This document shows, piece after piece, positions 25,408-31,214 of a DNA stretch of 64,000 nucleotides. This stretch comes from Adineta vaga (lineage: Eukaryota > Animalia > Rotifera): positions 6,510,001 through 6,574,000 of the forward strand of contig CP075493.1 in the NCBI GenBank assembly GCA_021613535.1, given 5' to 3'. Below the pieces are notes generated by a model. The model was given only the letters and a program-made list of their open reading frames with translations. It searched no databases and had not been told where the DNA came from. Within the stretch, counting starts at the first letter, position 1; each line of letters opens with the position of its first letter. The position numbers were made by a program, and so were the translations under genes.

Positions 25408-26093
25408 AAGAAATCTAGCAAATCATCCACATGGACTTCAATGACACTTCTTTTTCCTCCCTAGACTACACTGTTCCCTTTCTACTTGTTTTCTAAAATA
25501 GAAAATAAACTTTATTACTTTTCCCGTTAAAATCACATACATTGATATTATAATGAAAGATAAACAAGTTATATTCATACATAAAATTACAAATATATAG
25601 TGAAGAAAAAAACAAAACAAAAGAAATCAATTAGTATTATTCTCTAATTGAAATACTTGTAAACTGAATGATTTGATATATGTTACAAATGTTGAATTGA
25701 AATAGCGTCCTTTATTTATATTTGTATGTAACAGATGTCGATTCTCTATTTCTTTCTCATTTTAATGTCGAAACGATAGGATAATATTGGTTTTCTGCAC
25801 AGGAATCATCACGTATGTAAATGTTTGCTAATTGAAAAGAAACCTTTATATTATTCTCACTTTAATTATTGAAATTATCATATTGATTTAAACGTGTCAT
25901 TACGTTATCTGCTTGTAGTTAAAATGCGTAATGAGATATGCTGATAAGAAGAGAAATTTCATACAGAAAAGAAGTGATTCATTTCGAGTTCTATTAGTGT
26001 GTTGACGACTAGAGATGCATTAGTTCTGTTAGATAAACATTTTAAACATTTTCTTCCATAAAAATTAGTATTTCAATCGACATATTTTGAACG

Positions 26094-28202
26094 ATGGCCA
26101 CAAACACACCCAATTCATCTGTATGTCAACTAATCTTTACAATTCTATGATCGTTACGATCCATGTTAATATTTCAGATCAATGACCAATGTATTATATG
26201 TTTGTCGTCATTTGGTATTCAAGTTGAACGAATACCACATAGATGTACAAATGTTAAATGCAATCGACAATTTTGTGCTCAATGTATAAATCAAATACAG
26301 ATTTATAATGGAAATGAACGGTCATTTCGATGTATGTATTGTCTACAAGACTATTCTGACAATTGTGTTCCTGAAGAAAATCAAGTGCTTATTGCGCAGT
26401 TATGGGATGAAATCCGAATGAGATATAATATTGATCACATACAAAATCTATTATTAAATCAATGTGATCAGAGAGATTTAAGTAATGATATCGATTGTAG
26501 ACGACGTCATTTAATGAATTTGGTAACGTTATATAAACGTTTCTGTGGTCGAACACAATTTCTTTTCACTGTTGAATATCTCGTCAATCAACTTACTGAA
26601 CTTCTTCATTATTTGAATAAAAATAATGAGAATAATTTACAAGAATGTAAAAATTTGTATCAACGACTTATTTCATCTGTAGTCGTGAATGACCATGATA
26701 TTGGATTATTATATATCAATCTCTGTGAACGTTTACAATTGGAAATATCCGAAGCTGAATATTGTAGTATGTTTCCCAAGATCAATACGAAAATGAATGA
26801 ATGGTTGCACGAACAAGGTTCAGCAAAAGGATTTCAACCAAAAATTCTCGAACTATTCCAAGCAATTGAACAGGATCTAATTAATCAATGGAATAATCCA
26901 TATCTAGCCACACGAACAAAAATTGGAGTGATTGGATTTATAGGTGTTGGAAAAAGTTCTCTAATTAATTATCTACTTGGAATCAAATCTTTAGCCAATG
27001 ATGATGCTGCACCTGTTTCCATGACAAAAGGTACTTATTTTCCTTTACAATTTGATCAAAAAGAACCACTGATTTCTCCGGATGATCCAAAGAAGAAAAC
27101 GTTAGTGACCTTTGTAGATATTCAAGGTGTTGATAAGAATAACTATGATTCAAGAAATGAAGAACAAGAAGATGTTTATTTAGAAGAAATTCGTAAAGTG
27201 AATTGTGATATTTATATTGTTGTTTATGATGAAAAGTTACGCGCTGAACAAGAAGAATGGATCAAATTTATTGAAGAATATTTAAAGCGAAAATGTGTTT
27301 TAGTGCGAACAAAAGTAGATATTTATTATCAAACAAAACTTCAAGAATATATGGATACAACCAGTATTGTTAATGAACAAAATAATTCACAAGCAGCAAT
27401 TCTTGAACAATTACGACTTGATAATTCTATAGAATCACGATTTGTTTTTCTTGTTGCTTGTGATTATTCTTTCAAGAAGAATGATATCACGTCATTTGAT
27501 TTTCCGCTCCTAATTAGAGAATTAGGGCGTTTAGCGTTCGATGCATGTTCTAATCGAATTCATGTATTAGCTCACCAAACTATGGCACGTGCTATTAATA
27601 CAAGTTTTCGTCGTGGTTATGTACTTAATGTTATGAAATATAAAGTTGCTGCTGGATTCGCTTCTATAATACCATTTGGTGATCAACTACCTCGTTATCT
27701 TTCTCGTGATAGTATTCGTGAAGCATTTGGTATTGATGATAATCTACGACAATATATAAAACAGTTTCATATTATTGTTTATAATTATAAATTACAAACT
27801 TCAGTATTCAAAGAATGTGTAGAAGTTAAAAATTTACAAAGGAATTCTAAATTCGATGCAAAATGGATCGGAAGAACAGCTGGTACTGCCTTAGTTGTGG
27901 GTGGTGGATTTACTGAAGATATTATTCGTGTTGCCGTTCCAGCTGCTACTGCCCTATCAGGTGCTGCACGTGCAGCATTGACAGTAGCTACGATCGGTAT
28001 TGGCATTGTTATTTCAGCTGGTGTTTCTGCTTGGTCAGCAGTTGATAGTGGAAAACATATATTTAGTTACATTAATCGAACATGTGATGATATTATTATG
28101 ATCACTAATCCATTAATTACCATAATCATTGAACGTGAACGAGAGAAAGCGTTTGGCAAAGATCATATAATTGCACTTACCAAAGAGCAAAACGTTTTAT
28201 AA
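26094..28202 (+). CDS. RING-like Zn finger fused to an immunity-related (IRG/IIGP, p47-like) GTPase with C-terminal hydrophobic helices
   Basis: Exon 1 is 26094-26120 (MATNTPNSS); one 2-kb exon follows at 26178-28202. N-terminal CIIC...CTNVKC...FCAQC...CMYC; G1 KIGVIGFIGVGKSSLINYLLG; G3 DIQG; G4 LVRTKVD; G5 VFLVAC; Gly/Ala-rich hydrophobic C-terminus. Confidence 0.75.
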
Positions 28203-29087: not shown

Positions 29088-31214
29088 TTAATTTCGACTT
29101 TGTTTAGTTGAGAAACTTCGATTGAATGAATTATTTGGTGATACTGGACATAATAAACGTTTGAATGCTGTTCGAAATTCCACATTAAAAATAGTATAAA
29201 TTAATGGATTACATGCACTATTCATATAACCAAGCCAAAGAATTAATGTTGGCAATGGTTCTTCCAAATATGAATAAACTTCAATAAACGCTGATAAAAT
29301 ATACACAACAAAGAAAGGTAACCAACAAAGAAGAAATACACTGATAATAATTCCAAGTGTTCGAGATAATCGACGTTCACGTGTTAAAGAAATCTTTTGT
29401 CGTTCATTCATTAATGCAGCTAAACTTTTGCCTTTGAAAAGACTTCGACGACCAGCATCTCTCGATGAACGCAAGGGTTTATTTAACAATTCTGTTGTTT
29501 GAACAGCAGCATGTTGCTGTTGTGGTGGTTGACCTGTTGAACTATTTTCATGTTCATTTTCATCGATTTTACATTGATCGAATAGAGGACTTGTTGGTTG
29601 ATCATTATCTAGACACAGAGATTTTTTTCATTCTTCTAGATTTCATACAACAAAACAACTTAGGAAATAAATGTCTAATTTTCAATCGCAAAAAAAAGGT
29701 TAGTTTAGTAAGCGAAATGATCTCAATTATCGAAGAAAGATTGTTAAAGAATTCAATTAACTATAACAATAAACAAGAAAAATACCATGGAATTTCTGAC
29801 AGATATTATTTTTATAAATACATACAGTAAAACGGAACTGTTTGATAGGAAAAGGATTCAATTGTCTGTTATGATAAGAGCGAAAAATATGAGGGTTTTC
29901 TTTTCCTGCAGTTATAGAAGATTTTAAATAATAAAAGGTTTTTCAATTAACTTCTTTTCCTCAACTTATTTTCCATTCGAATTACTTTACTATAAATATG
30001 TAAACATATAGACATTTATCTATGACAATACTTACTTATTGAAAGTATTGTATTCTCATTGCGCCTGATTACTTCGGGTGTATGAATCGTTTTTGTCTGG
30101 CACTGGCCTAAATGATTGTTATTTGATAATAATAGTATTTTTGAGTGTATTGTTTCGTCAGCATCATCCGTACTAGGATTGTCTGCACCACTACCATTTG
30201 ATGCTGTTGATTTAAATGATCTATCATTAGTTTGAAGAGTCGCTGTTCTATAGACCTGTTTTTTACGATGATTATGATGATGTTGATGAGGATTATATTT
30301 CAAGCTATTGTTTGTTGTTGTTACATTATTTGGGGATGATTGATCAGGATTATTCCGACGTGTTGCATTAGCTAATTTGGCTGCCGCTAAAAATAGCAGA
30401 AAATCTCTTTAGAATAGAATAAAGATATGTGTTGAAATAATCTAACCATTAGCTCGTTCACGAAATCTCTTTTTTGTTTCGATAAAAACATGAGCATAAA
30501 CGATTGTCATAATTAATGCAGGAATATAGAATGATCCACATGCTGAGTAAATAACATATGCTTTATTTCTTGACAATTCACATTGCTGTAAATCATTAAA
30601 ATTTTGTAATTCACGTGATCCAAGTATGGTTGCTATCATTGGCGGAACTGATATCGTTGCTGATAAAAGCCACACAAGCATAATCAGAAAAAGAACACGT
30701 CGAATTGTTCGTTGACGAGCATATTGTATCGGATCACTTATGGCCCAGTAACGATCAAGCTAGAAAAAAAGTAGAATGAACAAAGAAAATGAAAGGAAAA
30801 AAAAGAAAGAATTCTTACTGCAATAGCACAGAGATTTAATATTGATGATGTACATAGAAGTACATCTGATGTAACAAATATTTGACAAAACATTTTCCCA
30901 AAAATCCATCGTTTGAGTATATGTGTAACAATATGAAATGGCATGACCATAATAGCAACAAACATATCAGAAAAAGCAAGTGAGACAATGAAAAAATTTT
31001 GTACAGTTCGTAATGGTCGAAATGTAAAGACAGATAGAATAACAAGAATATTTCCACAAATACATAAAACAACAATACTAGAAAGAACAAAGGCAACAGG
31101 TAATGCTTTAACTAATGGCATTGGACGAATCGTTGTTGATGACGTGGATGCTGTTAGTGTTGTTGAATTGACTGATGTCAAAAAATTAAATGTTGGAGAA
31201 GGATAATCTGCCAT
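29088..31214 (-). CDS. Biogenic amine GPCR, tyramine/octopamine receptor (Oct-TyrR/TAR1-like)
   Basis: [30 protein letters not shown]; TM3 [16 protein letters not shown]|LDRYWAI; TM5 [13 protein letters not shown]; long ICL3; [18 protein letters not shown]...CWLPFF; NPLIY. First in-frame ATG is 31214; the frame is open back to an acceptor-like AG near 31373, so an upstream exon is possible. Confidence 0.88.

Follow-up and report, generated by a model that had tools for sequence, protein, structure and literature searches.

A bdelloid rotifer gene family that combines a probable RING variant, an IRG-like GTPase and a candidate membrane segment in a single chain

The 64,000-nucleotide stretch of the bdelloid rotifer Adineta vaga analyzed here (GenBank assembly GCA_021613535.1, contig CP075493.1, positions 6,510,001 to 6,574,000 of the forward strand; hereafter the window, whose numbering is used unless a chromosome or locus is named) contains, at 26094-28202 of the plus strand, an intact, transcribed and spliced gene. 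Its product joins an N-terminal eight-cysteine zinc domain, which is probably a C4C4 variant of the RING finger and a putative ubiquitin ligase (E3), to a GTPase of the immunity-related GTPase (IRG/IIGP) type and to a hydrophobic segment resembling a membrane anchor. In public records the protein is labeled either 'hypothetical protein' or 'G domain-containing protein', our search of the literature found no description of a rotifer IRG, of a RING-IRG fusion or of a bdelloid RING GTPase, and this combination of RING, IRG-like GTPase and membrane segment is undescribed so far. With moderate confidence, we propose that the protein is held on a membrane, where GTP would gate the ubiquitin ligation carried out in cis by its variant RING, likely in the service of surveillance or defence; its E3 activity, its membrane topology and its immune role are what we infer from the evidence set out below.

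The open reading frame at 26163-28202 (+), of 679 amino acids, is by far the longest of the window, and it is one of only two there that reach at least 250 amino acids. Translation from an upstream ATG at 26094, with removal of a 57-nt intron (GTATGT donor at 26121 and TTTCAG acceptor ending at 26177), gives a product of 683 amino acids that is 100% identical to P0001, the NCBI hypothetical protein I4U23_002087 of Adineta vaga; this database entry, which equals the spliced model, provided the full-length protein for all whole-protein analyses. In agreement with this structure, RNA-like contigs from three runs of three different studies (X1, X11 and X12) join 26015-26120 to 26178-28202 or 28242, skipping exactly 57 nt with GT..AG ends and leaving the flanks uncovered, and the DNA-like run X9 covers the whole stretch unspliced. 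The contigs of all three runs start exactly at 26015, 79 nt 5' of the start codon and with no loose ends, and this position may be the transcription start. All codons but nine sit on one exon of 2 kb. An earlier note on this DNA, made from the sequence alone, had described the gene as almost wholly contained in such an exon and poor in introns, which fits these data, and the parts that it had listed (the eight-Cys RING-like finger, a spacer, the G1, G3, G4 and G5 motifs and a Gly/Ala-rich C-terminal region) were all found at the positions collected in Table 1.

Several lines of evidence support the assignment of the GTPase to the IRG/IIGP type, as had been proposed, rather than to Era, AIG1 or another TRAFAC family. 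The Pfam IIGP model (PF05049) scored 51.8 bits against a cut-off of 24 and aligned residues 250-545 to positions 34-310 of its 375, and MMR_HSR1 scored 37 bits. The best sequence matches in the PDB by phmmer were Irgb10 (E 6e-5) and then Irga6, the Irgb10 alignment running from the P-loop to residue 539 of the query (residue 336 of the chain), past the G domain. An alignment of 47 family sequences was built and used as input for an AlphaFold2 model (predicted local distance difference test, pLDDT, 75.5; predicted template modeling score 0.78). When this model was submitted to Foldseek, ranks 1-38 were all IRG entries (GM4951, Irga6, Irgb6 and Irgb10), with E down to 7e-10 and most of them aligned over 320-372 columns, and the structural alignment by VIA placed residues 208-466 of the model on residues 38-255 of Irga6 (4lv5_B). 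Among 29 matches from outside the family that were scanned with Pfam, 23 were IIGP proteins, the rest being three EngA-like proteins, one with repeated MMR_HSR1, one Dynamin_N and one without a strong family; those IIGP matches whose names were looked up came from fishes, lungfish, sharks, lizards, hamster, the bivalves Mercenaria and Mya, and amphioxus.

The family alignment also showed which of the nucleotide-binding motifs are constrained. The Gly and Lys of the P-loop are invariant, G4 reads (T/S)KxD and G5 L-x-A-x-D, and the Gln of the atypical G3, confirmed as DIQG in place of DLPG, is at least 90% conserved. The position that follows the G3 Gly, equivalent to Gln-61 of Ras, is Val in the window protein and is never Gln in the 47 sequences. 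A large hydrophobic residue at this position is a feature of IRGs that, according to Bekpen et al., is far from diagnostic (PMC1297648).

To place the GTPase among its relatives, a maximum-likelihood tree of G domains (44 rows, 215 columns) was rooted on three EngA-like matches. One clade (95/95*) united the vertebrate, bivalve, amphioxus and A. vaga canonical IRG-like sequences with a small group of RING/B-box-like/IIGP proteins from metagenomes, and another (95/74) contained the whole rotifer RING family and its distant relative P0164, a metagenome protein of 717 amino acids. Within the limits of a tree that has EngA as its sole outgroup family and several long branches, that draws on a sequence search favouring RING-bearing proteins, and that intron-split canonical IRG-like genes entered as uninterrupted open frames only, the rotifer RING family is a sister lineage of the canonical IRGs and not nested within them. 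The part of the earlier proposal that held up is that the GTPase is IRG-related; it does not fall inside the canonical IRG clade, of which A. vaga has its own separate members. The latter gave IIGP scores of up to 236 bits (C1:873739-874683) and 219 bits (C6:13450262), form a cluster on C6 and include three equally scoring tandem copies on C3 (20208611, 20222325 and 20236133), and in the tree they sit with the IRGs of bivalves, amphioxus and vertebrates and not with the RING family.

Two other architectures were observed in the course of this comparison. In the metagenome or SRA proteins P0182, P0231 and P0232, an IIGP domain occurs together with a canonical RING, a B-box-like Cys/His cluster and a coiled-coil-like region; they can be described as TRIM-like IRGs. 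One gene with the RING/B-box-like/IIGP arrangement lies at L023:2140-4239, with a second IIGP gene on the opposite strand at L023:1085-1858, and the word search yielded two relatives of P0182 and one of P0129. In P0200 of Branchiostoma lanceolatum (XP_066299936.1), a 'GT4-conflict' glycosyltransferase domain (PF20706, 209 bits) is fused to an IIGP GTPase.

The eight cysteines of the N-terminal domain (C14, C17, C32, C37, C42, C45, C61 and C64, in the pattern C-x2-C-x14-C-x4-C-x4-C-x2-C-x15-C-x2-C) fit the spacing of a cross-brace finger in an all-Cys variant that has no His, and none of them varies among the 27 sequences whose N-terminus is intact; among these are three A. vaga paralogs taken from the genome sequence, of which two share only 31-33% identity. 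Nearly all of the 50 closest structural neighbours of this domain found by VIA were RING or U-box E3 domains and none was a PHD finger. With Foldseek, the best match was the RING of TRIM25 bound to its ubiquitin-conjugating enzyme (E2), with a probability of 0.98, and the top fold matches included the RINGs of TRIM25, TRIM23 and TRIM32 as well as U-boxes. The strongest argument for homology to RINGs is, however, the bridge provided by P0164. This protein aligns end to end with the family profile (E 5e-10), has the same order of parts and carries two RINGs, the second of which (residues 77-125) is a canonical C3HC4 RING; on P0164, four Pfam RING models score above their cut-offs, namely zf-RING_UBOX (47 against 25.2 bits), zf-RING_5 (41.4 against 27.9), zf-C3HC4_4 (34.4 against 30) and zf-C3HC4 (32 against 21). 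When the N-terminal family profile was compared with this second RING by hhalign (E 4.6e-5, probability 68.5%, 80 columns), the two were in register at seven of the eight ligand positions; the canonical His had no counterpart, and an additional Cys occurs in the rotifer finger, five residues N-terminal to the third canonical ligand. Because of this register, the two zinc sites are likely to be C14/C17/C42/C45 and C32/C37/C61/C64. The two usual E2-contact positions, which we presume from what is known of c-Cbl, are hydrophobic in the family, the residue before the second Cys being mostly I, M or V (T or A in a few members) and that four residues after the sixth Cys being I or V.

The structure of a complex between residues 8-105, an intronless A. 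vaga E2 of the UBE2D-like type (L013:1483-1953) and two zinc ions was also predicted; its score of 0.01 was below the mark and weighs neither for nor against binding. The E2 fold (UQ_con) is matched at least 74 times in the A. vaga genome, many of these matches being complete domains in uninterrupted frames (for instance, L013:1483-1956 and L017:1483-1953) and some lying in tandem clusters (C3:19.31-20.03 Mb and C1:5.84-5.85 Mb), and the E2 repertoire of this genome looks large and intron-poor.

Between the finger and the GTPase lies a bundle of eight helices, the final pair of which is equivalent to the N-terminal helices of IRGs such as Irga6, and C-terminal to the G domain a long helix is followed by the highly conserved motifs FRRGYVLN and IIPFGDQLPRYL. 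No Pfam family matched the last 210 residues. Within them, the only 19-residue Kyte-Doolittle windows that reach at least 1.6 start at residues 602-613 (maximum 1.97), and, of six other family members tested, five have a similar transmembrane-like stretch at the same relative position. The terminal helix was modeled with good confidence (pLDDT 85-94 for residues 641-670). From this helix, and from alignments of the model with mitofusins that span residues ~203-661 and thus take in the terminal helix, the regions on either side of the hydrophobic segment would seem to form part of a single helical assembly in the cytosol, and therefore the anchor would probably be a hairpin or a monotopic one. 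The presence of such a segment suggests a resident membrane anchor rather than the recruitment from the cytosol that is typical of IRGs. A paralog clade represented by P0036 (C2:10642288-10644318; 46-49% identity) starts with MGNF(T/S)xK, which fits the N-myristoylation pattern MGxxxS/T. According to Bekpen et al. (PMC1297648), this pattern is found in Irga6 and ten other mouse IRGs.

Taken together, these data are consistent with the following mechanism. Attachment to a cellular membrane would be through the hydrophobic segment, which would probably form a hairpin or a monotopic anchor, and GTP binding would lead to the head-to-head pairing of G domains that has been solved for Irga6 (5fph, one of the best matches of the model). 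Such a pairing would bring two RING domains together, and the paired RINGs would activate the E2~ubiquitin conjugate as TRIM-type RINGs do, the outcome being a GTP-gated ligation of ubiquitin in cis on the membrane where the protein resides. By analogy with IRGs, the most likely biological role would be membrane surveillance or cell-autonomous defence; the more specific role of a pathogen-membrane ubiquitination effector, put forward as a candidate in the earlier note, goes further than these data. In mice, membrane-bound GKS IRGs help to bring TRAF6 and other E3 ligases to the vacuoles of pathogens, and Trim21 is present there as well (PMC4802790).

A number of observations weigh against this proposal. 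Since the G domain is not a member of the canonical IRG clade, what is known of IRG biology may not apply to it, and the rigid-body superposition on IRG structures takes in the G domain only. The spacing of four residues between the third and fourth Cys is atypical for a RING, and the PHD_NSD model gave sub-threshold matches in 22 of the 27 family members (best E 9e-4). The hydrophobic region has pLDDT values of 24-38, so the hairpin rests on a low-confidence part of the model, and the window protein starts with MATNT and does not have the myristoylation-like MG...S/T start of the paralog clade.

Two serious rivals have to be considered. According to the first one, which we find possible if somewhat doubtful, the protein would be a housekeeping regulator of organelle membranes, that is, a resident, membrane-anchored dynamin-like GTPase tethering, fusing or quality-controlling the endoplasmic reticulum, mitochondria or lipid droplets, in the manner of mitofusins and atlastins; its RING would ubiquitinate neighbouring proteins for turnover, and there would be no immune role. 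Shape searches in the Atlas gave matches to bacterial GTPase-DUF697 membrane proteins over residues 205-683 (template modeling score 0.48-0.49, by the matched model), and a total of about five paralogs shows no sign of a large expansion of the immune type. GM4951, itself an IRG, is a lipid-droplet GTPase (PMC12749288). Mitofusins and Fzo1 formed the next tier of Foldseek matches after the IRGs (E ~2e-5), with alignments that extend from residue ~203 of the model to 661-676, and up to residues ~754-756 of the chain, in its C-terminal part beyond the membrane anchor. However, these alignments have a root mean square deviation of 9-11 Å and an identity of 12-14%, Dynamin_N scored 18 bits against a cut-off of 27, and a DUF697 signal is absent at the sequence level. 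A DUF697 (PF05128) C-terminus was in fact tried as a candidate and rejected, since no Pfam match was obtained in 22 C-terminal regions at E up to 10 and hhalign with E. coli YcjF returned a probability of 0.1. Moreover, an organelle factor would be expected beyond rotifers, and the named proteins with this architecture in an exhaustive search were from bdelloids only.

The second rival, which we judge rather unlikely, takes the eight-Cys domain as a structural or interaction zinc finger devoid of E3 activity, engaged for example in dimerization or in lipid or protein binding, and would reduce the protein to a membrane-anchored IRG-like GTPase. None of the Pfam RING models reached its cut-off in the window protein or in the 27 family members; zf-RING_2 scored 13-17.4 bits against 27.3, with sub-threshold matches in 22 of the 27 members (best E 4e-4). 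The B-box, ZZ and FYVE models, like PHD_NSD, remained below threshold too, zf-B_box giving no match in the window protein and only sub-threshold matches in four of the 27 members (best 0.014). In addition to the unusual spacing and the missing His, the last Cys is followed by Leu and not by a basic residue (Arg or Lys); some RINGs have, there or at an adjacent position, a basic 'linchpin' that helps to activate E2~ubiquitin. Two other types of finger were tried. The PHD finger, suggested by the spacing and by PHD_NSD, was ruled out since no PHD domain appeared among the structural neighbours, and the C2H2 fingers, which are the best PDB sequence matches of the N-terminal profile (E ~1e-3) and as such agree with a non-catalytic finger, match through the spacing of two Cys pairs and a linker, their His ligands being absent from the family. 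Against a non-catalytic finger stand the RING and U-box neighbours in the structural search, the E2-bound RING of TRIM25 as best match, the hydrophobic residues at both presumed E2-contact positions and the canonical C3HC4 RING at the homologous position of P0164. As to the earlier description of the Cys cluster as RING-like, the cluster is modeled as a domain of probable RING/U-box type and is in register with the RING of P0164, and it is not matched by any Pfam RING model at its cut-off.

A broader proposal can also be made, which we regard as unlikely: the family would be an old sister lineage of all canonical IRGs in which GTP-driven pairing of G domains on a membrane switches on a built-in ubiquitin ligase, as a single-chain, interferon-free counterpart of the mammalian route, where IRGs on the membrane recruit E3 ligases encoded separately. 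In the rooted tree, a RING is borne by three groups that are not part of the starred group of canonical animal IRGs, namely the rotifer family, P0164 and the TRIM-like P0182 group, and therefore the link between IRGs and ubiquitin could be ancestral and later have been split into separate genes.

As regards the origin of the gene, the family was found to be small, and every named member is from a bdelloid rotifer, which bears out the earlier suggestion of a lineage-specific family. An exhaustive hidden Markov model search with the family profile retrieved 188 proteins at E ≤1e-3 among 1.84 billion representatives, including a long-linker subfamily of 740-940 amino acids with the same finger, whose named members are from Adineta; a word search returned 62 strong relatives (query coverage of at least 61% for 61 of them and of 30% for the other), all the named ones being from Adineta or Rotaria. 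A. vaga has about five loci with the RING-IRG-like architecture, on four chromosomes. The open frames of three paralogs begin, like that of the window gene, immediately before the first Cys, which agrees with an intron position common to them. A recent horizontal acquisition or a retrocopy, the origins offered as possible ones in the earlier note, appears very unlikely. Bdelloids are known for abundant horizontal gene transfer, and the window gene has a single intron where the genes of the region have many; but that 57-nt intron is spliced and lies within the coding region, at a place that the paralog frames fit, the G+C content of the gene (0.30-0.36) is the same as that of its surroundings, the paralogs are old (31-52% identity) and dispersed, with orthologs in Adineta and Rotaria, and most of the named nearest relatives from outside the family are animal IRGs. 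Vertebrate IRG genes usually carry their coding sequence on one long exon; if this is so in general, the long exon would be characteristic of the family and would not point to a foreign source. That the RING-GTPase fusion is an artefact of annotation or assembly joining two genes can be practically dismissed, given the uninterrupted frame of 679 amino acids, the single RNA-like contigs of 2121-2131 nt that run from the RING to the stop codon in two runs, and the recurrence of the architecture in dozens of independent assemblies and in the paralogs.

Table 1. Positions of the gene parts, of its paralogs and of the canonical IRG-like loci of A. vaga
Feature	Position	Strand	Evidence
Exon 1: 5' untranslated region from 26015 or earlier, ATG at 26094, nine codons (MATNTPNSS)	26015..26120	+	RNA-like contigs, N-terminus of P0001
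Intron, 57 nt, GTATGT...TTTCAG, phase 0	26121..26177	+	Spliced in X1/X11/X12, unspliced in X9
Exon 2: residues 10-683 and stop codon (28200-28202), one 2-kb coding exon	26178..28202	+	Open reading frame, P0001, contigs
Eight-Cys zinc domain, probable C4C4 RING variant, residues 14-64	26190..26342	+	Invariant Cys, fold matches, hhalign to P0164
Eight-helix bundle, residues ~78-248	26382..26894	+	AlphaFold2 pLDDT mostly 82-95
IRG-type G domain, residues ~250-447	26898..27491	+	
G1, GFIGVGKS	26934-26957	+	
G3, DIQG	27117-27128	+	
G4, TKVD	27309-27320	+	
G5, LVACD	27450-27464	+	
Helical region after the G domain, residues ~451-560, with conserved FRRGYVLN and IIPFGDQLPRYL	27501..27830	+	phmmer to 539, IIGP to 545
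Gly/Ala-rich hydrophobic region, residues ~572-632	27864..28046	+	Hydropathy
Transmembrane-like core, residues 602-631	27954-28043	+	19-residue Kyte-Doolittle windows
Conserved C-terminal helix, residues ~633-668, motif SGKHIFSY.NR.CDD	28047..28154	+	Near-invariant residues
Family locus, window gene	C1:6.54 Mb		
Paralog, 49% identity	C2:10.64 Mb		
Paralog, 52% identity	C3:4.81 Mb		
Paralog, 32% identity	C1:17.02 Mb		
Paralog, 31% identity	C6:5.18 Mb		
Canonical IRG-like locus	L026:584-1951 = C1:873583-874950	+	
Canonical IRG-like locus	C6:13450262-13451149		
Canonical IRG-like locus	C6:8917921-8921495		
Canonical IRG-like locus	C2:6282485-6283084		

Just downstream of the gene and on the opposite strand, an open reading frame of 133 amino acids (29088-29489, minus strand) resembles the last transmembrane helices of a rhodopsin-type G protein-coupled receptor (CWLPFF and NPLIY motifs) and is probably one exon of a split gene.

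For a long time invertebrates were described as lacking IRGs (Bekpen et al. 2005, PMC1297648), and the presence in one bdelloid rotifer of canonical IRG-like genes along with a divergent RING family bears on the age of the IRG system. In mammals, the ubiquitination of pathogen vacuoles via IRGs is known only in outline, E3 ligases such as TRAF6 and TRIM21 being recruited to IRG-bearing vacuoles (PMC4802790). A single chain that unites an IRG-like GTPase with an E3-type finger and a membrane anchor would make a compact system in which to ask whether GTP-dependent oligomerization gates ubiquitin ligation on membranes. If the finger is non-catalytic, or if the protein is a housekeeping organelle factor, the family would represent an ordinary lineage-specific shuffle of domains.

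When compared with the vertebrate IRGs Irga6, Irgb6, Irgb10 and GM4951, the rotifer protein has in common with them a GKS-type P-loop, a T/S-K-x-D G4 motif and the absence of Gln at the Ras Q61 position, an IIGP match above the cut-off that reaches the helical domain, the best PDB matches by sequence and by fold, and a coding sequence placed nearly all on one long exon; the paralog clade, unlike the window protein, also shares with Irga6 its myristoylation-like start. In contrast, its G domain belongs to a sister clade and has DIQG instead of the DLPG of IRGs at G3, it has a RING-type domain at the N-terminus and ~130 residues of additional helical bundle, and the soluble C-terminus of IRGs is replaced by a transmembrane-like segment and a terminal helix. 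No interferon system is known in rotifers.

The union of an E3 ligase and a GTPase in one chain has a precedent in TRIM23 (PMC12075517). That protein (ARD1) consists of a RING, a B-box, a coiled coil and a small C-terminal ARF GTPase, with no membrane segment, whereas in the rotifer protein the GTPase is IRG-like, no B-box was detected by Pfam and the linker is a helical bundle, modeled as eight short helices without the long antiparallel coiled coil of TRIM proteins. RNF112 (ZNF179), which we take to have, like the window protein, a RING followed by a large GTPase of the dynamin-superfamily type, differs in that its GTPase is of the GBP type and not of the IIGP type, and the Pfam search of the window protein gave no GBP match. 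The TRIM-like proteins P0182, P0231 and P0232 also have a RING at the N-terminus of an IIGP-type GTPase, but their RING is canonical and has His ligands (C-x-H-x2-H or C-x-H-x2-C), P0182 lacks a transmembrane-like segment, and their G domains lie within the canonical IRG clade (95/95*), outside its starred named animal IRGs; they may represent a separate fusion event.

Finally, the order of helices, GTPase, helices, hydrophobic membrane segment and C-terminal helix returning to the bundle resembles that of mitofusins, Fzo1 and bacterial dynamin-like proteins; mitofusins, apart from the low identity, poor superposition and sub-threshold Dynamin_N score mentioned above, have no RING and are much larger. 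The bacterial GTPase-DUF697 proteins resemble the rotifer protein in the GTPase and the C-terminal membrane part, a likeness between predicted structures that sequence does not support and that serves as a lead only.

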